This document shows, piece after piece, positions 1,778 through 57,237 of a DNA stretch of 64,000 nt. The position numbers were made by a program, and so were the translations under genes. The notes beneath the pieces were generated by a model. That model searched no databases. It was not told the DNA's origin and was given only the letters and a program-made list of their open reading frames with translations. The stretch's first letter is position 1; each line of letters starts with the position of its first letter. Location of the stretch: contig OZ241832.1 in the NCBI GenBank assembly GCA_965202585.1, forward strand, positions 23,250,001-23,314,000, written 5' to 3'. Source of the stretch: Thalia democratica (taxonomy: Eukaryota).

Positions 1778-3320
1778 ATGGAAAACATTTTGAGACTAAC
1801 CATTGGAAAGAATAACATTGATGAAGGTTTATTAAAGGCACTTCTAATAAGCATGTGGCCAAAAATCAAGAAAGTTCACATTACTCAAAAAGCCAGTTAT
1901 GTGGTATTCTCAACTGTTGAAGAAGCAAAACAAATGCTGGATTCCAAATCAATGAATCTTGAAGGTTACTTGGTAAAAGTAGAGAAGCTAGATAGAAAGA
2001 CAAGAAAAGATTTCAAAAGTTTAAGCAAGATTGCTTCAACTGAAAATAAATGTGACACGCTATCAAATGAACTTACCTGTTTACAAACGCAGATTGAAAC
2101 AGAGACTGTTTCTGACAAAAGTAATCAAAACAATAATAAAAAGAAACGTGCCTACTCATCGGTAAGCATTTATATTATACATCAAAGTATAACAAAGTAA
2201 GATAAAACATCATAAAATTGTTTGTTTTCTTAATTGTTTACAGTTTTTTAAGTCTATATAGTTTATGACTTTGGTTAAAATATTAGAAACAGACTAAAAA
2301 TTTATAATATTATATTTAGCATTTAGTAACGCTTAACACTGTCTTATATACAATAGAAATAGGAGTATAATTGATTTTAATTTATCAAACTATTTATCTT
2401 TATAGATATTACGAAACAATACCAAAACAATGACAACACCCAAAGTTAAGAATAGACGTATAAGTAAAAACTATACTCAGTTGTTTTCAAAATTAAAAAC
2501 AAACAAGTATCTTGAAGAAATCGAAACATCAAAATGGTTGAAATGTTTAAACAACTCAATGAAACAACATACTTGGCACCAAAATGTTATGCAAAGTTTT
2601 GTTAAAAAAGACCAATTTGCTTCTATTCAAATGAGTTGCAGTGATCTTTGGTCAATAGCAAACGAACAAAGCTACATAGAAGATCCTGTTTTAGACGCAG
2701 TCCTAAACGACAGTTTTAAGGTTCACAAACAAATAGGGTTTATTGAAACAAGTGTTTTTAATGCAATTGAAAACCCTTACTTCAGGGAAACGACTGTAAC
2801 TCCTTTCAAAAATGATAAAGACGCGTACGTTGCCGTCAAGAACATCAACTTTTTAAACAAAACACTTTATGTTGTGGATCCAAGGCAAAATGATAAGCAG
2901 ATAAAAACAGCAAGAAAAGTTATGAAAGCTTTTAAACAAGTGCACCATAACGAAATCAATGCAATTGAAACATCGAAATGGAACTTTATGAGCGATGAAT
3001 GGAACTTTGATTGTATTCAGCACAATATTCAGAGAGATTGTGTCAACTGCGGTATTTATTGCATGGAATACGCTTTGAAAGTTAAAAATGATTTTCCTAT
3101 TAAACCTTCGTACTTACTCGTTGAAAGTAACTTTAATGATAAAAGGCAGTTTTATACCGCAATGTTACTAAACGTTTCAAAACCAAAGCTTAAAGTCGAT
3201 AATGAAACAATAAAAGAAGAAGAAAAAGAATTTATTGAACATCCTTATTATGTGAGTAAAAGTTTAGATGAAGACGGATCAGGATTGGTTATAACATTAA
3301 AAAGAAAAAAAAAAACTTGA
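1778..3320 (+). CDS. RRM-like + Ulp1/SENP (peptidase C48) protein, copy 1, lacking the catalytic His; join(1778..2161,2406..3320), 432 aa
   Basis: Exon 1 has an RRM-like pattern (LRLTIGKN..KVHITQKASYVVFSTVEEAKQML..GYLVKVE). Donor TCG|gtaagc at 2161 and acceptor tttatag|ATA at 2406 are both phase 0 and in frame with the 2430 ORF. Exon 2 has VVDP and QRDCVNCGIYC, but a 30-nt in-frame deletion at 2845/2846 removes NNNHWIFVFL relative to copy 2. Confidence 0.75.
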
Positions 3321-8691: not shown

Positions 8692-9074
8692 ATGGAAAAC
8701 GTTTTGAGACTAATCATTTGAAAGAATAACATTGATGAAGGTTTATTAAAGGCACTTCTAATAAGCATGTGGCCAAAAATCGAGAAAGTTCACATTACTC
8801 AAAAAGCCAGTTATGTGGTATTCTCAACTGTTGAAGAAGCAAAACAAATGCTGGATTCCAAATCAATGAATCTTGAAGGTTACTTGGTAAAAGTAGAGAA
8901 GCTAGATAGAAAGACAAGAAAAGATTTCAAAAGTTTAAGCAAGATTGCTTCAACTGAAAATAAATGTGACACGCTATCAAATGAAATTACCTGTTTACAA
9001 ACGCAGATTGAAACAGAGACTGTTCCTGACAAAAGTCATCAACACAACAATAAGAAAAACGTGCCTACTCATCG
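8692..9074 (+). pseudogene. Disrupted RRM-like exon of the RRM-Ulp1 gene, copy 2
   Basis: Homologous to 1778-2161, but codon 10 is TGA (8719-8721; GGA in copy 1) and a 1-nt deletion in the A-run before the donor (9074) shifts the frame. Confidence 0.8.
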
Positions 9075-9341
9075 GTAAGCATTTATATGATACATCAAAG
9101 TATAACAAAGTAAGATAAAACATCATAAAATTGTTTGTTTTCTTAATTATTTACAGTTTTTTAAGTCTATATAGTTTATGACTTTGGTTAAAATATTAGA
9201 AACAGACTAAAAATTTATAATATTATACTAGCATTTAGTAACGCTTAACACTGTCTTATATACAATAGAAATAGGAGTATAATTGATTTTTATTTGTCAA
9301 ACTATTTATCTTTATAGATATTACGAAACAATACCAAAACA

Positions 9342-10271
9342 ATGACAACACCCAAAGTTAAGAATAGACGTATTAGTAAAAACTATACTCAGTTGTTTTC
9401 AAAATTAAAAACAAGCAAGTATCTTGAAGAAATCGAAACATCAAAATGGTTGAAATTTTTAAACAACTCAATGAAACAACATACTTGGCACCAAAATGTT
9501 ATGCAAAGTTTTGTTAAAAAAGACCAATTTGCTTCGATTCAAATGAGTTGCAGTGATCTTTGGTCAATAGCAAACGAACAACGCTACATAGAAGATCCAG
9601 TTTTAGACGCAGTCCTAAACGACAGTTTTAAGGATCACAAACAAATAGGGTTTATTGAAACAAGTGTTTTTAATGCAATTGAAAACCCTTACTTCAGTGA
9701 AAAGACTGTGAATCCTTTCAAAAATGATAAAGACGCGTACGTTGCCGTCAAGAACATAAACAACAATCACTGGATATTTGTTTTCCTCAACTTTTTAAAC
9801 AAAACACTTTATGTTGTGGATCCAAGGCGGAGTGATGAGCAGATAGAAACAGCAAGAAAAGTTATGAAAGCTTTTAAACAAGTGCACCATAACGAAATCA
9901 ATGCAAGTGAAACATCGAAATGGAACTTTATGAGCGATGAATGGAACTTTGATTGTATTCAGCACAATATTCAGAGAGATTGTGTCAACTGCGGTATTTA
10001 TTGCATAGAATACGCTTTGAAAGTTAAAAATGATTTTCCTATTAAACCTTCGTACTTACTCGTTGAAAGTAACTTTAATGATAAAAGGCAGTTTTATACC
10101 GCAATGTTACTAAACGTTTCAAAACCAAAGCTTAAAGTCGATAATGAAACAATAAAAGAAGAAGAAAAAGAATTTATTGAACATCCTTATTATGTGAGTA
10201 AAATTTTAGATGAAGACGGATCAGGATTGGTTATAACATTAAGAAGAAAAAAACTTGAAAAACAAAAGTAG
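9342..10271 (+). CDS. Ulp1/SENP-family cysteine protease (peptidase C48) with intact catalytic residues, 309 aa
   Basis: NNNHWIFVFL (His 9768-9770), VVDP (Asp 9819-9821) and QRDCVNCGIYC (Gln 9972-9974, Cys 9990-9992) give the His-Asp-Gln-Cys order of C48 proteases. The ORF is uninterrupted from ATG 9342. Confidence 0.8.
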   Translation: MTTPKVKNRRISKNYTQLFSKLKTSKYLEEIETSKWLKFLNNSMKQHTWHQNVMQSFVKKDQFASIQMSCSDLWSIANEQRYIEDPVLDAVLNDSFKDHKQIGFIETSVFNAIENPYFSEKTVNPFKNDKDAYVAVKNINNNHWIFVFLNFLNKTLYVVDPRRSDEQIETARKVMKAFKQVHHNEINASETSKWNFMSDEWNFDCIQHNIQRDCVNCGIYCIEYALKVKNDFPIKPSYLLVESNFNDKRQFYTAMLLNVSKPKLKVDNETIKEEEKEFIEHPYYVSKILDEDGSGLVITLRRKKLEKQK

Positions 10272-26315: not shown

Positions 26316-28490
26316 TTATAATTCCTCAACACATTTTGGCATTGCAGACCACTTTCCATCAGATTGACATTTAATCACCTGAGGGCCGGCTCTGTTTGAA
26401 ATAGATGTTATTGCTTTTTTGTAAAATAAAAAAATAAATCTTTGATTTCTAAAGAATTTACGTTTTAGTTGATACTTTGTAAAGTTTGAAAGTATTCGAA
26501 AACCCTTTAAACCAAACTTTCTTTTAACCAAACAAGATAGGTAGATGTAATTGCGCACAATAAACGCGTAACTAAAAGACAATTTAACTAACAATCATAA
26601 GTTTAACACTTAAAAAAAACCTTTCAAATCCCGACTTGCAGAACACACTGAGTTTCTCATTGTATCGGTAGGGTCTCGGCTCTTCGAGTATTGGCTGGTA
26701 GGGTCCCTCTAAAATCATGGTCTTCACGTTAAGGATGTCGTGGGGTTCTTGGCTGCATACTATCGGTTTGCATTCGGGTATTTCACCTACCCATTGACCA
26801 TTTTCGCCGCAAACTGTTGTTTTGAGTTTTGCTTTGTTGATTTGTTATTTTTTGATAAATAAAACTATAGACTGTTTTATGATTATCTCCAAAATAGTCT
26901 TTTTAAAACTAAAACTTGTGCTTTACATATATAAACTAAAATAAATTAACTAATGAATGTTGTTGAATAATATAGGGATTGCAAGAACATTTGACGGTAA
27001 ATTTTAAAACAATCTTTTTTTATACTTCAATTTCACAGGTTTAAAAAGAAGTAAACTTTAAGACTTAAGTTTTTAATAATAACTTAACTAAACTTAACAT
27101 AACTTAACAACTTAATTAAACTATTTTGGTGTATTTGTAACAAAGTTATCAGATTTTAAAAATAATTTTTATGATTGCTTTTTTTAAACTTAACTTTTGA
27201 GTTGTATAGTATAATAACTGTTATTTAATTTCAATATTCAAAATAAACATATACTTTTTTTTTACTAACCAACAGTGTTTGTTTCGCTACTAATTTCGAA
27301 CCCACTCTCACAAGAGTAAGTGGCAACGCTGCCTATCTTTTTTTCAACTGAACCTCCAACATTTACTTTTCCGTATTTTGGCAAAACTGGGGAATTTTTG
27401 CATTTTATCTCTTCGCATGTAGGTGTGGGATTTGACCATTTTCCTGCAATAAAATTATAATGAACATTAATTTTTTAACTTTATCTAAAAAATGATACCT
27501 ATGTTTTTTCAGTTGAAAATGAAGACTTATTTGAAACTAATATATAAGTTTATCTATTGTCAAAGCATTTACATGTGCTTAAAATGAGTATCTTTACAAA
27601 ATTCTTTGAGCATTCAGGCTCTATTTACAAAGATGAAAAACTAAGTAGTTTTTATTGTGGAAGAGACAGTGTTAACACAGAAAATTACTAATTAGTCATG
27701 CTTTTGTGAATTTTATGGAATTTAGTATATAAAAAGATAAAAAAAAAGCAACTTATTGCATAAAACGATTAATTTTATCAAGTTTTTTCGAATTATTGAA
27801 AACTAACCATATTTCAAACAAGTTGCTTCGCTTTCGCCATTCAACTTGAATCCTTTTTCGCAGGAATACTTCATAACACCTCCTTGTTTAAAGCTCTGAC
27901 CTTCTATCGTTCCATCCACTATGTAACCAGGTGAAGGGCAATCTTTTAAAATAAAGTTTTAGTGAATAGCTGTAAGTTATGTTTGTTGTAAAGAGCAAAC
28001 ATTGTAACTAAGTTTATAACGTATTACTACGTATGGATATTTAATTAAAATCTTCTTTTGGTAGTCATTTCAACTTTTCAGTGTTGATAAATAGTTTCAA
28101 CAACTGTTAATAAATAGTTATTGGTAGTAGGTATTCTCTGTTATTCATTAAAACTAGTAAATTGAAGACTATGCTTCATAAGATATAAATCAATAACTAA
28201 AAAAATACATTATTAAATTTTTTTTTTTTTATTTCACGTATATAACTCAAACCTTTATTCATTAAACGCTTATCTTCTTCTAACTTTCTACAGTTTTCTC
28301 TCCTTTGAATTTTTCTGCATCCTGTAGTAAAAAAACCAAGGGCCGCACAAGACTGCAGTTGTTTTTTGAATCTCGGCTTGTCGGTTCCTATTAAGTCTTT
28401 CGCAGTGCATTGCTTCTCACGTACAGCACTAGCCGAACTCAACAGAACGAAGAAAAGAATAATACTCAACAAACAAAAATTTACTCGCAT
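26316..28490 (-). CDS. Secreted protein: basic 4-Cys N-terminal domain + 3 CCP domains, paralog A; complement(join(26316..26391,26621..26813,27270..27443,27808..27942,28253..28490)), ~271 aa
   Basis: Signal peptide MRVNFCLLSIILFFVLLSSASA; CCP motifs CPSP..YSC..TC..W..PTC, C..YSC..VC..W..PEC, C..FC..KC..W..PKC; no TM segment. Exons 2-4 equal paralog B in length (135,174,193). The exon-1 donor is ambiguous (28253 GT versus the homologous 28274 AT). Confidence 0.85.
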
Positions 28491-42920: not shown

Positions 42921-45900
42921 ATGCGAGTGAAATTTTATTTATTGAATATTATTCTTGTGTTGGTTCTTCTGAATTTAGTTAGTGCTAGACGAAAGAAACA
43001 ATGCACTGCAAAAGATTTAAAAGGAACCAACAAAAAGAGATTCAAAAGTAGACTGCAGGCCTGTTTTGTTGTTGACTTTATATCTAAAAAATGCAGGAGA
43101 ATTCAAAGGAAAGAAAACTGTAGAAAACTATTAAAAGGTGAACGTTTAATGAACTTTGATTTGTGTATTTATATATAAGATATAACGTTAAAAGACGTTA
43201 AATCCTGAAGATCCTGATAAGTTAAGCTTATCGGAATACATACCTAGGATGTTTTTGTGTCAAAACTTTATTCCGACTAACGGCGTTTCAATGCTCTCAA
43301 ATAAATTTAAGAACAGATCTACGGAGTCTATAAAGTATTAACACACATTAGAAAAAAAACATGTATAATTATGTATAATTTTTATGTGAGTAGTAACTAT
43401 AAACGAACTTTATGGTTAAAAACACAGTTTGGAATAAAAACATAGAAAAAAAAAAGTTGTCTACGAAAATTACAAATTTAATAAAACCTCAAAAAAGTTC
43501 TGAGAATAGGCAAGTTTATAAAAGTGAAAATAAAATTATTCTGTTTTAAATAACTTGTTTAATTTGTTTTTATTTATAAAAAATAATTCTACAGAGGCCG
43601 CGTGCCAAGGTTCAGCTTTTAAATCAAACGATCCGGGTTTAATTCCCGGTAAAAAAGAAAGTGGTGTAAAACTCGATAACCGAAAGGTTTTTTGTTCACC
43701 AGGCCCTTATGCCAAACATTTTAAGCATTTTTTTATGGTTCATTAAACAATATATATGTTACAAGCAATTCCTAATCAAAATTTAATTTTTAAAAGATTG
43801 CCCTTCACCTGGCTACATAGTGGATGGAACGATAGAAGGTCAGAGCTTTAAACAGGGAAGTGTTATGAAGTATTCCTGCGAAAAAGGATTCAAGTTGAAT
43901 GGGGAAAGCGGAGCAACTTGTTTGAAATATGGTTGGTTTTTGAATTTTTTGAACAATCATATACTCAGAGTGCTTATTAAATATGGTTTAGGATAAAATG
44001 TACATAAATATGTACGTCATTAAGTTTAAAGGATTCAAAAAACAAAACAGTTTTAAGAAATTTTTGTACTTTAATTAAAATAATCAAAATTTTTGATTTA
44101 TCGCTCGAATTGATATCTGAGATAAAATTCTTCACTTTATTAAGGTAAATGGTCGAATCCCACGCCAACATGTGAAGAGATAAAGTGCAAGGGTATGCCA
44201 GTTATACCAGAACATGCAACTGCGAATCTTCGGAATTTAGTTGAGAACAAAGTTGGTAGTGTTGCTACTTACTCTTGTCTTAGTGGGTATGAAATTAGAG
44301 GTGGAACAAACACTGTTGGTTAGTTAGAAAAATTAGATGTTCTATTGCTAAGATTAATGTTGAGAAAAGCATTTTAAGGTTACAAGTGTCAAAGATAAAT
44401 AAAATGCTCTTAAGTTTTAACATGTATAGAGGTGAGAAAACAAGAAAAATAGTTTCAACTTTGTTTAATCCAGGGACGTAGCTAGCTCAAAAAAGTTACG
44501 AATGTGCAAAAACTAAAACATCTGAAATAACACGTCCTAGCGGGAACACAGCAATTTAAACTACCTCTAATATTATTGAATTTAATCTGAAAAAATGCAG
44601 TTATGTCAATACATCAAAAATTGAATGTTGAAGTACGAGTGATAACTGTATACAAGTCAATTTATTTTGCTCCACACCCCATATGACTTTTTATGTCATG
44701 CCACTTGTGTAAACCCAGAAAACATTCATTAAAAAAAATTACAATTTAACTCAAAAACATTAATATTGTTTTTATTCAAAAATTTAAACGTATAAAGTCA
44801 AACATTTAACGTAGTCAATAGTAACAACAAGTTATGCAAATTTTTGTAACATAAAATTGTATGATTTTGATTTTTGAAGCTACAGCTTTCAATAGGTTTA
44901 ATTTTGCATTGTAGCTTTTTGACAAAACAAAGCTTTAACGCGCTAAATGTTACAATTTGGATGTACTTAATTCGTTCAATTTTTTTACGACACTAAAAGT
45001 CCTAAAGAGTACATATATGTCAAAATTATCTCTCAGGAGTGCATAACTAAGCACAAATGAATACTAAAAGCTAAGAAAGCCGAGTATTTTCAAGCTGAAA
45101 TAAAAGCAAGCTTTTTTGCACATAAGTATACGTTTCTGTAGATTTGCAGAAACGTACCAAGCCACGTCCCTGGTTTAATCCTTTATTAGTTTTTCAATTA
45201 TTCTTGTATATAGTTTTTTTTAAACATTTTGTATAGACTTTGTTTGTTACTTTAAATATTATAAAAGTTTATAAAACTAACTTAATTGCTACATGCCTTT
45301 TACTAAGTAAAACGTATTTTTTATATAAAAGCTGTCAAACTAGAATTTTATAGTTTGTAGCAAAGCAATAGTTTTAAAGTTTCAGACTAGTTTAAAAACA
45401 AAGAAAGACTTTCCCATAAATATTTTTTTCTTTTGCTAGGGCTGTGTATGACAATTTATAATAAACGAACTTACTTAATTTAAAAAAGATTCATTTAGAA
45501 AACATTTTCTATAAAAAGTCGTTGTTTTTAATCTTGTTATAAAATATTTAGACGAAAATTAACAACAAAACAATTAAACGTGTAACCTTAACAATCTCTT
45601 ATACTTTGATAATATTATCATTAGACAAAAGAAGAACTTGTTTACTATATGTTATCTATCTTTTTACAGTTTATTAAACTAATACCTTACACTTTAGAAA
45701 TGAAGCTTGGAATGTTAACGTTCATAACAAAAGTCTTGATAGTCTCTTTACTAGTACATGAAAATATGGTTTTTCTATAATCTGCGAAACAAAACAAATT
45801 GTAACCAACAACTTTATATCTTTAACATAGAAATTAGTTTAACTCTTTTTTATTGCACATCATTCTTGCAACCCTTGTATTAACAAAATAAACTAAACAA

Positions 45901-52809: not shown

Positions 52810-54146
52810 CAGGGGCGTGTTTTGACTAGTTTCCTGTTTCTTATGAACCCCCTGATAAAAGAAAAAAAAATTCTTAGAACATCACTAAAAACGTTGTTTA
52901 TTGACTTTGTTTTGGTTATTTGATAAACTTTGAATAATGAATGTTGAATTTATAACACTGAAATATTAAAAAGTTGCAGTAAAAAAAATGCTCGTTTTTA
53001 CCCAGCTGAAATAGATTTTAAATCGAATTTTAACTGTGACGTCATAATAGGTAAAAGTTTTTTTAGTAGCATTTTTTCTAGGAAACTTTTTACTAAGATG
53101 CTCTTTTCCGTTATAAATTGTTACTTAGTGAAATATCTTTTGAGTACTGTTTTTCAATTTATAACTACAATTTTACTTTTGAAATGTCCAATATAATCAC
53201 TAAAGTTTTATTTTACTTAGTTTATTGTATATAATAATGTTATGTTGTTATACAATAATGTTGTGTTTGTACTTAAACGTTAATATTTTTGTTTATGTGT
53301 CAACCAGCTGGGCTTAAAACAATAAAATTTCAATTCAGAGAGTTTTCAAAATCATCTTTAAACAACTACACCACCTGGAAATTTATTCTTTTATCATTTA
53401 ATGGTAATTTAATATTTTTATTAAAGTTGTTTTATTTTTTTATATCTGTTGGCAACCAAGTTGAATCTTGATTTTTTTAAATTTTTAATTCAAAGAGATT
53501 TTAAAACCATCATTAGAATCCCTGCACTATCAGGCATACATTTAAATAAAACTTAAAAATATTTTAATTTAATTGTAGAAGTCTAAACTTTTTTTTAGTG
53601 GAGTATAAGTTTTTATAGACTAAATTATTTGAATTTTTTTTTTATTGTAAGTAGATATATAAATGTAAAAAGTTTAAATTTTAAAAGAAAAAAATTGTAA
53701 AAACTCCTTCTATACTAACATTTAAAACAAAATTGAAATTCTTTTTATAAAAGTTTATTCTAGTTTCAATTATTTCATAATATTGTTTCCTGATTAAAAG
53801 GTTAAATTTTATAGAGTTAGTTAGTTATGTCGGTATAATTTTGTTTTAATAACAGATTTGAATTTTGATATACAATTTGTAAGTTCTTAACTTTTTTCTG
53901 GTTCTTTTTGCTTTGATTTATTTAAATTTAATACAGTATAATAAAAAAAAATAGTATTTTTCTACTACTACTTATATGTTTTTTTTTGTATTTCTGAGCA
54001 GAAAAAAAAATTTAAACACAGAGTTTTTCGGCTAAATATTGCGTACTTAACTGGCAGTGCATACCTAATTAATGGGTACTTAAGCGGCAAATTAAGAACA
54101 AAAAAAACTGTGAACCCCCTTTGAAAAAAGTTTAGACACGCCCCTG
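52810..54146. mobile_element. hAT non-autonomous element, 1337 bp
   Basis: TIR CAGGGGCGTGT / ACACGCCCCTG; 8-bp TSD GTTTATTT / GTTTAGTT (7/8 match). Confidence 0.88.
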
Positions 54147-54278
54147 GTTTAGTTAAACTAAAAAAATTGATGCAACATTTCACTTTACAATCATTTTTAA
54201 AATAATAAAAAAAGGCAGTTTAAAAGTCTTAAAAAATTAAAAAAACAATAATTTTATATGTAAAAAAATTAATATTAA

Positions 54279-54285
54279 TATAAAA
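54279..54285 (+). promoter_or_regulatory. Candidate TATA box of the prepropeptide gene
   Basis: TATAAAA starting 54 nt upstream of ATG 54333. Confidence 0.4.
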
Positions 54286-54332
54286 AACAGTTGCAGTTTT
54301 GACATATTAAACATTTAAAATAAGATATTACT

Positions 54333-55081
54333 ATGATGTTTAAAACCGGGAAATCTTCTACTTTGTTTTTTATTGGCTCAATTCTGGTTTTTCTTTTGGT
54401 TGTACAGAATTACGAAGTTGAAGCTAGAAGGTTTGTTTAATTACTAACATGTACATCACAATACTTAAGCAAAAAACTAAAAAACCATGTTTCTAAAATT
54501 TATATAAATCGTACAAGATCTGAAGTTTTTATAGTCTATCCACCGATAAACCTTTAAAAAAATATTTTACTATGTTATAGTATTTTTTTAAATTGAAAAT
54601 TTTAAACCTATGTCAAAAATTATCTCTATAAATTTAAAAAATAAAGTAAAAACAGTATCAAAATAGTTAATAGAGCTATATGTTATTAGTTTTGTTTAGT
54701 TGTTTAACAACCACGAAACAATTTATATGATTCGTAGACTAACATTAAGAATGTTGAGAAACATGAGTGTTGAACAACTACGCAATGTGAAATGTGAGGG
54801 TAGAATGTTAAACTATTGCAATTACATTGGATCATGGTGCACTGCAGAAATATTAACCGTTCGCAGAAAAAGAGATACTGGTAACTTTTGTTTGTTATAT
54901 GTAAAATGATAGAAGCATTAGGTTTACTTTAAGGTACCTTGACTAAGATAATGTATAAATTTTTATTGAACGATAAAGAAGCGCTTAAAAATTTTGCTCC
55001 AACGACATGGTGTACAGAAAAAAATTTTGGTTATCGAGTCGTACACCACACTTTTTTACATTTTCAGATGAGCTAGAATAG
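54333..55081 (+). CDS. Small secreted Cys-containing prepropeptide; shortest model join(54333..54430,54738..54880,55068..55081), 84 aa
   Basis: Signal peptide MMFKTGKSSTLFFIGSILVFLLVVQNYEVEA; phase-2 intron (AG|gtttgt..cgtag|A) into RRLTLRMLRNMSVEQLRNVKCEGRMLNYCNYIGSWCTAEILTV-RRKR-DT; phase-1 intron (G|gtaact..ttttcag|AT) to DELE*; AATAAA downstream. The exon-2 acceptor and the choice of last exon are uncertain. Confidence 0.65.
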
Positions 55082-57237
55082 AATGAACTTAAAAATAAAA
55101 ATTTTTAATCCTTGAGAAATAAAACAATGAATAAAATTAAATAGAAGAAAAGAAAAGTATTTTTTATTTAACAAAATGTTTTAAACCTTGAAAGTAAAAA
55201 TAAAAACAATAACATTTTTTGTGAAAAAAAAAAAAAATGAAACATATTTATTTAAAATCTTAAGAACATGTTTTAATAACTAGTTTAAAGTTAAAAAAAC
55301 ACTACATTATTTAACAACAATGTAATGTTTCAGTTGGCAAAAAGAAAAACAGAATTTGCAAAATATGCAGAGAAGTTTGTTACAACAAAGATTATTGGTT
55401 CTGAGCAAGTTGAAAACAACTTCTGTTATGACTGAAGCATCAACTATTAAAATGTTGTTTATAAATTTTTATATTTTTGTATAAAAAATACTTTGATCAG
55501 TAGCTATACTGTTTTATTTACATATAAATATAAGTGACTTTGTTTTTTCGGAAAATAAACCGTAAATGTTGACCATTTGTTACCAAATGAACTTTTTTTT
55601 TATGTTCATACTTTGCTTATAAGTGAAATAGATTCCACATTCAGATAACAACTTTATCAAAATACTTATCTATTTCAAATTTATTATTCAGCTGTAAAAC
55701 TAATATTTTTTAAAAGTTTCAGTAATTTAAACTAGCTCTAAAAGTTGTTGTAATGTTATTTAATAAACTATTTAGTTTTCACTGAAAAAAACTCTGTTTT
55801 AAACTAAAACGTTTCTTTTTGCCTATTCGTAGTAAGACATAAACATTTACATTCCATAACAAAAAGCGTACTTACTAGATACTGTTACGAAACTACAAAA
55901 AAAAAACATTAAACAACTTTAAAGTAAATGATTTTCATTCGTTATATAAAGTAGTACTCTATCGTTTAGTTTTACTACCTAAATCAGACAAAATATATCT
56001 TTTTGTATAAAAGAATTTAACTACGATGTAATATAAGATAGCTTAGCAACAGAAACTTATTATGCGTAGTTTACTTTTGTTTCTATACTTGAGCTAATTC
56101 GTTTGTTGTTTAGTTTTTGTCTGTAACAAAGTACTATTTGTGCTAGATTAAAACAATTTAAGCCAATTTGGTACCCCTGTTTAAGTTTAAATAACATTTG
56201 TAACTAACGTAAATAAATTCATATGCTTTCCAATAGTAAAAATAAGAATATTAAGGATTAAGATTCATAGTTACTAAATGTAAATAAAAAAAAAATAATA
56301 TATTCATATATATAAGAGTTTTTAAACTTTACTTATAATGTAACTAACATATAATCAAATTTTAATTATCTGTCTTAAATTGTTGTACTTAAGATTAAAG
56401 AAAAATAATAAATTAAGTTACTTATAAAAAACCATTAATGTTTTACTAACTTTTACAAATGTAAGGTAACAGATAAAGGTGGTTGTAACTACAACTATTT
56501 TTTGATTGTATACATATTTAAATGCTTTAATTTAACACTTGCTAATAAATCTACTAAACTAAATGTTGTAGATATTCTTAATAAAAGTCTTATTTTTTTT
56601 TATAATATTTGGTATAGCTATGCAACATTATTTAATAACTATATTATTATTTTAATATAATTATAGTAGGTACATGATGAACTCTAAATAAATTCAAAAC
56701 AGAAAACTATCTTACGTTTGTGTAAAACTAACTTGATAAACACTGTTATAAGCATTATACTAGTGTAGACCCAATTAAAAATAAATATGTTCATACTCAT
56801 TTGTAAAAAAATGTTTATTAACGTGTTCTTCTAAAAAACATATTTTCAGTTATTTAAGTTTTTTATTTAAAAAACACTTTAAACTGGTGTTAAAAAAAAC
56901 TAATATTTTGGAAAGTACTCGTTTATTTATAAACCAAAAACACATTAGTACTTGTATCCTATTGCTTTTTATACAATTCTTACAAATATTTTATTCACGC
57001 TACATGCGAAGTTTTCAACTTAGTGGTGAACCAAATATCTTACTGTAACATTTCAACATTTAAGATTTTAATGATTTTTGCTGTTATTAAGTACTTATGA
57101 AAAAATTAAAATGCAAAGTTTTACAGATCATTCTCTAAACAAAACTTCAAAGTTAACATGACATAGTTTTAGAATGTATTTTACTTAAATTATATTATTA
57201 TTCTTAAAGTTATCATTTCTACAGTTTTATAGGTTTA

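Follow-up and report, generated by a model that had tools for sequence, protein, structure and literature searches.

Precursors of endothelins and sarafotoxins carry a C-x7-C spacing, a C-H-x-[DE]-[IV]-[IL] motif after a Cys, a downstream furin site (R-x-K-R) and a C-terminal Trp, and the ascidian antimicrobial peptides clavanin and styelin are helical, linear and free of Cys, and their precursors carry acidic extensions at the C-terminus. Insulin and relaxin prohormones have a signal peptide and two Cys-bearing helical segments joined by a variable connecting stretch with basic convertase sites; their six Cys are distributed 2+4 (C-x11-C and CC-x3-C-x8-C) over two chains that lie in different exons. 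The mussel MgCRP-I precursors are short, secreted and equipped with six invariant Cys, and form a lineage-restricted multigene family that is missing from annotation (PMC4558851). Here we describe a locus on the forward strand of a 64,000-nucleotide (nt) stretch of Thalia democratica contig OZ241832.1, hereafter the window, whose numbering is used throughout. This locus is likely a real, unannotated gene of three exons (54292–54430, 54738–54880 and 55334 to approximately 55930), encoding a small secreted six-Cys precursor with one true last exon. The gene is predicted to encode a convertase-processed, Cys-rich secreted propeptide; no named relative was found, and all its relatives come from environmental or unannotated assemblies.

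The likeness of this salp gene to the insulin and relaxin prohormones is one of architecture only. With them the salp gene would share a signal peptide, two conserved Cys-bearing helical segments and a variable connecting stretch flanked by basic convertase sites, and by analogy the six Cys would be shared between two chains from different exons, with interchain disulfides expected. However, the salp Cys are arranged 3+3, with C-x7-C-x6-C in the N-terminal half (N-half) and C-x2-C-x3-C in the C-terminal half (C-half), and the salp family has expanded to approximately 40 copies. Membership of the insulin/relaxin family was rejected because the insulin framework was found in none of 35 family sequences (semi-automatic models of 29 loci plus six transcripts) and neither Pfam, at E values up to 10, nor a PDB profile gave a match. 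With the endothelin and sarafotoxin precursors the salp peptide shares C-x7-C, C-H-x-[DE]-[IV]-[IL], R-x-K-R and a C-terminal aromatic residue. Endothelin is a 21-amino-acid (aa) peptide ending in Trp with four Cys on one chain (C-x-C-x7-C-x3-C), whereas the salp peptide is without C-x-C, has x6 in place of x3 and has a second three-Cys half. Endothelin membership was rejected on this framework and on the lack of a Pfam endothelin hit, and we treat the likeness as coincidence. An ShK-type (ShKT) domain was also rejected, since the C-half reads C-x2-C-x3-C rather than the required C-x3-C-x2-C and gave no Pfam hit. Like clavanin and styelin, the gene is of tunicate origin and specifies a cationic peptide behind a predicted signal peptide; their acidic extensions find no true counterpart, as the acidic DELE tail at this locus belongs to a non-conserved, repeat-derived pseudo-exon. 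The MgCRP-I family (PMC4558851) and the salp family are alike in being lineage-restricted, unannotated multigene families of short six-Cys precursors, secreted in the mussel and predicted to be so in the salp. They differ in that, in the salp family, conservation is highest in the N-half core, the linker varies and the six Cys are divided 3+3 by an internal convertase motif. A Pfam scan of two family proteins (P0001 and P0005) gave, at E values of up to 10, a single weak hit to an unrelated family, a PDB sequence profile search with the family alignment found no relative, and the Atlas feature search gave no usable neighbour. Foldseek against the PDB found no match, which is weak evidence given that the query model has a predicted local distance difference test score (pLDDT) of 57.

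The coding sequence starts with the ATG at 54333. Exon 1 (54292–54430), which is delimited by paralog identity and by a homologous transcript, L051, consists of a 5′ untranslated region (UTR; 54292–54332) and the first coding segment (54333–54430). It encodes a signal-like sequence composed of a basic N-region, a hydrophobic core LFFIGSILVFLLVV and then EVEA-R(R); the basic N-region, the 14-residue hydrophobic core and the V-x-A motif are all conserved in the family. The phase-2 donor at 54430 (AG/GTTTGT, where the slash marks the exon border) opens intron 1 (54431–54737, 307 nt), whose GT..AG ends are kept in 8 of 8 close paralogs and which is absent from L051. Exon 2 (54738–54880), supported by the paralog alignment, runs from the acceptor TCGTAG/A to the phase-1 donor CTG/GTAACT and encodes the N-half, with Cys codons at 54793–54795, 54817–54819 and 54838–54840 forming C-x7-C-x6-C and with RRKR encoded at 54862–54873. 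Intron 2 (54881–55333, 453 nt) is skipped by L051 and holds the AG dinucleotides of two further candidate acceptors, A (54934) and B (55068), and a dispersed repeat of approximately 200 bp (54955–55160). Exon 3 follows the acceptor GTTTCAG/TT; its coding part (55334–55404) supplies the basic linker and the C-half, with Cys codons at 55357–55359, 55366–55368 and 55378–55380 forming C-x2-C-x3-C, an aromatic residue near the C-terminus and a TGA stop at 55402–55404. The exon boundary lies 2–4 codons past the basic site, so each half sits in its own exon, and the three-exon model gives a precursor of 103 aa. The probable 3′ UTR (55405–55930) is based on the L051 alignment and on an AATAAA (55554–55559) within a block kept in the close paralogs and in L051. 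The window, with 26% guanine plus cytosine (GC), thus carries a copy with an intact open frame, four of four canonical splice sites, all six Cys and RRKR. Scans of 53000–56500 against Rfam and for internal repeats gave nothing relevant. Everything that the sequence-only reading had located (coordinates, ATG, splice sites, C-x7-C-x6-C, RRKR and three AGs proposed as acceptors) is present on direct reading, and its idea of an unannotated secreted prepropeptide gene from a family without detectable known relatives is supported by the paralogs and by the null family searches.

The choice of the last exon is carried by transcripts of homologs. Relatives came from an exhaustive HMMER search, for which the exon-2 peptide was the query, and from a later profile search; the hits are a few unnamed environmental proteins. 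Six of them (P0001, P0005, P0022, P0023, P0025 and P0028) are spliced, full-length precursors whose transcripts come from marine plankton metatranscriptomes, and all six join the N-half directly to the linker and C-x2-C-x3-C, with candidates A and B in none. The transcript encoding P0001, L051, is an intron-free contig of 1071 nt from JGI sample 3300018893. Its bases 20–151 align to 54289–54429 at 80%, bases 163–289 map to 54754–54880 and end exactly at the exon-2 donor, and bases 289–906 map to 55333–55923; it also aligns to approximately 55923–55991 at 66–72%. In the homologous mRNA, the exon-2 donor is thus joined straight to the acceptor at 55334. The transcript L061 (P0023) aligns in three exon blocks to L038 and L047, two genes on C2, with 93–97% nucleotide identity, and P0023 agrees with the L038 gene model at 99 of 100 amino acids, so that this species, or one very close to it, expresses a family member with the three-exon plan. 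P0005 is 81% identical to the gene at C5:17.42 Mb and reproduces the junction predicted there. L062 ends in poly(A), and L061, L062 and L063 begin with ACATGGGG, which we take to be a remnant of cDNA template switching. Bases 917–1071 of L051 are a dispersed repeat that is also approximately 80% identical on many chromosomes of the Thalia genome, so repeat families are shared between the L051 source species and this genome.

Other hits of these searches did not qualify. P0002, P0003, P0013, P0024, P0026 and P0027 were rejected as isoforms, being unspliced read-through open reading frames (ORFs) from metagenome assemblies. P0004–P0020 (except P0005 and P0013) were rejected as relatives, being long bacterial proteins (404–1103 aa) with 4–6 weak stretches each; the six that were scanned are beta-propeller, DUF285 or Lon-type proteins, which points to spurious repeat matches. 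Word-index protein searches returned nothing for the exon-2 ORF and only P0001 itself for P0001. Scans of metagenome contigs with the protein profile and with a 24-nt exon-3 pattern gave no match, in a collection that evidently does not include the metatranscriptomes holding L051.

The same exon structure emerged from the paralogs. The 801.8-Mb genome assembly holds eight close copies of the whole 1.15-kb locus at 92–100% DNA identity (C8 23.23–24.04 Mb and C34), several copies at approximately 70–80% identity and many distant ones. In an 11-way alignment of the eight close and three divergent paralogs, identity between the two groups was 0.89 for exon 1, 0.78 for exon 2 and 0.78 for the exon at 55334, compared with 0.64–0.72 for the introns (64% for intron 1). 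Every aligned copy retains the acceptor TTT(C/T)AG in front of 55334 together with the reading frame across C-x2-C-x3-C, all four splice sites are conserved, and a block near the 5′ end, CAGTTGCAGTTTT, is kept in 11 of 11 aligned paralogs. The same type of exon 3 is present in approximately 20 distant paralogs, where the three-exon plan is kept. The 3+3 Cys form, which the sequence-only reading had listed among several options, is accordingly the real product, as only the exon at 55334 is both conserved and found in homologous transcripts.

The 5′ end of the gene is probably formed by trans-splicing. L051 carries the tunicate leader ATTCTATTTGAATAAG (16 nt) at bases 6–21, which is the Ciona spliced leader (PMC1488885). 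The bases after the leader align from window position 54289/54292 onward, just past an AG at 54290–54291. Judged from this alignment, the AG is the probable trans-splice acceptor and 54292 the probable mature 5′ end of the window copy. Three other homolog cDNAs start without the leader. Genome-wide, the leader followed by GT occurs in 358 exact copies versus 0 in a reversed control, so the genome uses the Ciona-type leader, as befits a tunicate. Leader-plus-GT copies recur on C26 (7129–84046) at a regular spacing of 15,085 bp, with one step of 16,560 bp, and spliced-leader gene copies cluster on C4 at 80.16–80.42 Mb. Directly upstream of the gene, very high-copy repeats occupy 53300–54235, and contig depth reaches 250,000–360,000 at 54002–54118 compared with approximately 600 over the gene. 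Repeats thus border the promoter region and come to within approximately 100 bp of the 5′ block that is conserved.

Searched with an N-half profile, the genome yields about 41 loci. They lie on C8 (23.23–24.09 Mb), C2 (4.23–4.58 Mb), C5 (17.42 Mb and 60.83–60.87 Mb), C10 (32.38–32.40 Mb), C4 (80.85 Mb) and the small contigs C34 and C384; those on C8 and C2 form arrays produced by tandem or segmental duplication, and C5, C10 and C4 carry smaller groups. The search for paralogs and orthologs that the sequence-only reading called for thus yielded these loci and the environmental orthologs, with only one terminal exon conserved among them. All 35 family sequences fit the plan C-x7-C-x6-C ... C-x2-C-x3-C. 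From N- to C-terminus, a member has a predicted signal peptide, a short pro-piece whose last residues are basic, C-x7-C-x6-C, a basic site, a linker and the C-half, where a Trp or Tyr near the C-terminus comes after C-x2-C-x3-C. The basic site, [RK]-x-[KR]-R, sits 8–9 residues past C-x7-C-x6-C. Conservation peaks in the N-half core (consensus CxGRxxKICNYLGSYCHAEVL), and in a 19-row alignment the three N-half Cys, one Gly and the Arg residues at P4 and P1 of the basic site are invariant; P2 is nearly always K or R across subfamilies that share only approximately 40% identity. The linker is 10–42 aa long with a net charge of −3 to +19, the upper end being reached in the C2 subfamily, and it is only 10 aa in the subfamily of the window copy. 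Two orthologs nearest to the C5/C10-type genes, L060 (Logan SRR6713271; 45% GC) and L062 (JGI 3300019010; 52% GC), have connecting stretches of 33–42 aa that are partly non-basic and flanked by basic pairs; their proteins end exactly at Cys-Trp and their 3′ UTRs are 1.3–1.4 kb long.

From this plan a route to the mature peptide can be proposed. Exon 1 would provide the signal peptide, with which the precursor would enter the secretory pathway and fold with three disulfides. Exon 2 would contribute a helical N-half with C-x7-C-x6-C ending in RRKR, and exon 3 a brief basic linker that leads into the C-half and its C-x2-C-x3-C. Because the number of Cys in each half is odd (three), at least one disulfide would bridge the halves if all Cys are paired. 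A furin-type convertase would cut after the conserved R-x-K/R-R, in long-linker members further cuts at basic pairs would probably release a connecting peptide, and the end product would be a two-chain, disulfide-linked peptide. Convertase P-domains (P_proprotein) occur at at least three genome loci. In the AlphaFold2 model of residues 24–97 of P0001, each Cys core is covered by helix, and the basic linker is modelled with low confidence; the conserved R-x-K/R-R lies between the helices, in a region with pLDDT below 50. As modelled, the basic linker is compatible with an exposed cleavage site. The two-chain, furin-cut peptide of the sequence-only reading is plausible, as RxKR is conserved in the manner expected of a convertase site. 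As for function, the strongly conserved non-Cys residues of the N-half (CNY[LI]GSYCHA[ED]) would point to a specific ligand or an inhibitor rather than to an antimicrobial peptide with generic membrane activity, and the high copy number together with the very basic linkers suggests that a defence effector would also fit.

Judged from sequence features, a convertase-cut, disulfide-linked two-chain peptide is the most likely product. Our broader proposal is tentative: the genes may represent a new tunicate family of two-chain disulfide-linked peptides, with an insulin-like precursor logic on an unrelated 3+3 Cys framework, in which an older form with a long connecting peptide (C10/C5-type, with the GC-richer orthologs P0025 and P0028) was amplified in salps into approximately 40 variants with short and basic linkers that act as signalling ligands or defence effectors. 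Several points weigh against the three-exon gene model and its two-chain product. The gene structure, the family, its conserved motifs and the expression of homologs are observations, and the steps of cleavage, bridging and secretion are predicted. The AlphaFold2 model is of low confidence (pLDDT 57). No RNA from the exact window copy was found, and the three sequencing runs that were found, of unrecorded kind, are DNA contigs, since their coverage extends equally over introns and intergenic DNA, without any splice joint. In exon 2, identity to the nearest transcript, L051, reaches only approximately 80%. The dN/dS (ratio of nonsynonymous to synonymous divergence) of 0.44 among seven intact close copies, whose dS is close to intron divergence, rests on few substitutions. 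In the window copy, the polypyrimidine tract scores higher at candidate B (0.87) than at the 55334 site (0.53), and with this stronger tract the candidate B acceptor may see minor use.

Among the alternatives, the one that survives best is that RRKR stays uncleaved, the six Cys forming one compact single-chain domain and the basic stretch a surface loop that could, for example, bind polyanions. We regard this as somewhat unlikely. It accords with the predicted status of the processing steps, with the 10-aa linker of the window subfamily and with the C2 linkers, which at up to +19 net charge could themselves be functional. However, the invariant Arg at P4 and P1 and the almost constant K or R at P2 extend across subfamilies as divergent as those described above, the linker varies freely in length (10–42 aa) and in sequence with fixed spacing in both Cys cores, as would be the case for an excised or tolerated connecting segment, and convertase genes are present. 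Processing to two chains remains the reading we prefer.

It is improbable that the window copy is a silent or decaying duplicate in an array of an otherwise functional family. The missing RNA would suit this view, and other members are indeed damaged. At L018 (C8:23.363 Mb), TGA replaces the fourth Cys codon and truncates the C-half; at L023 (C8:24.039 Mb), a difference in the last codons removes the usual stop and adds 19 residues with two extra Cys, a C-terminal read-on similar to that in the source species of P0001. In a member at C8:23875260–23880581 (partly in L030), the exon-2 region is split by approximately 4.6 kb from the intron-2/exon-3 region, and this copy was probably disrupted by an insertion. 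In contrast, the window copy has its frame, splice sites, six Cys and RRKR intact, as does a copy at C8:23.637 Mb that is 99% identical to it in DNA, and dN/dS is below 1 family-wide.

The remaining alternatives concern the two candidate acceptors in intron 2. The segments of candidates A and B have identities of 0.66 and 0.33 between close and divergent paralogs, at or below the intron level. In 4 of 8 close paralogs, CGG stands in place of the candidate B CAG, and the divergent paralogs have nothing that corresponds to it. The repeat in intron 2 (query bases 645–860) matches many chromosomes at approximately 75% identity, with 839 first-look candidates, and contig depth over it is approximately 39,000 versus approximately 600 in neighbouring bins. 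Alignment with 10 other genomic copies placed the start of the repeat at approximately 54955 and showed that it supplies most of the candidate A reading frame, including the string TWCTEKNF, whose CCTGGTGTAC core is carried by other genomic copies as well; at the position of candidate B, 10 of 10 other copies read TTTCTTACGAGCTA, without AG. Given the repeat alignment and the non-conservation, candidates A and B are repeat-derived intron sequence, with B a mutated part of this repeat. Moreover, the interval between 54900 and 55420 contains 31 AG dinucleotides, each of which yields some C-terminal tail, so frame compatibility is uninformative for a last exon.

Within the same gene model, the 55068 acceptor could serve as a minor or cryptic site in the window copy and in the three paralogs that keep CAG, giving an N-half-only product that ends in DELE. 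This, too, we consider improbable. The site, TTTTTTACATTTTCAG/AT, makes a strong acceptor and precedes the true one, and AATAAA motifs follow at approximately 55119–55137, but such motifs are common by chance at 26% GC, the unconserved site has no transcript support and a three-Cys product without its partner half would leave an unpaired Cys. Least probable, and very unlikely, is the proposal of the sequence-only reading that donor 54880 is alternatively spliced to 54934, 55068 and 55334 so that splicing picks the post-cleavage partner: all three AGs exist with open tails, and that of candidate B with a good polypyrimidine tract, but any of the 31 AGs gives a tail, the A frame is a dispersed repeat, the B AG is lost or absent in paralogs and repeat copies as described, and the six homologous transcripts (0 of 6 with A or B) use only the type of exon found at 55334. 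The fit of three acceptors to one donor is hence not beyond chance. Two associated claims of that reading lapse: the echo between SWCTAE and TWCTEKNF is a coincidence, the latter being part of the repeat, and the analogy with the acidic extensions of clavanin and styelin, having rested only on the DELE tail of candidate B, falls with it. More generally, chance alone will produce frame-compatible alternative last exons in AT-rich introns, and such candidates should be checked in paralogs. The gene is accordingly described here with its single last exon at 55334.

Two further pairs of features were observed in the window. Two paralogous ORFs at 28197–28490 (minus strand) and 42921–43178 (plus strand) face apart and have a signal-like start followed by a very basic 4-Cys stretch (..KQCTAKDL..); scanned as single ORFs against Pfam, they gave no hit, nor did the single ORFs neighbouring the gene. 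A duplicated cassette at 1778–3320 and 8767–10271 contains an ORF of 296/309 aa whose Atlas feature neighbours are Ulp1/Peptidase_C48 clusters (score 0.94), with no Pfam hit at E 0.01; it resembles a protease gene of transposon type that is present twice.

Thaliacean tunicates stand close to the vertebrates and are ecologically important, and their peptide repertoire is almost unknown. The present analysis adds to it a prohormone-like family of approximately 40 loci that is expressed in the ocean, as seen in metatranscriptome contigs, and that escaped the searches of Pfam, PDB sequences and Atlas and the Foldseek comparison. Should the two-chain product prove right, the family would bring a new Cys framework to the processed peptides of animals and would offer a tractable case of tandem expansion with remodelling of the linker.

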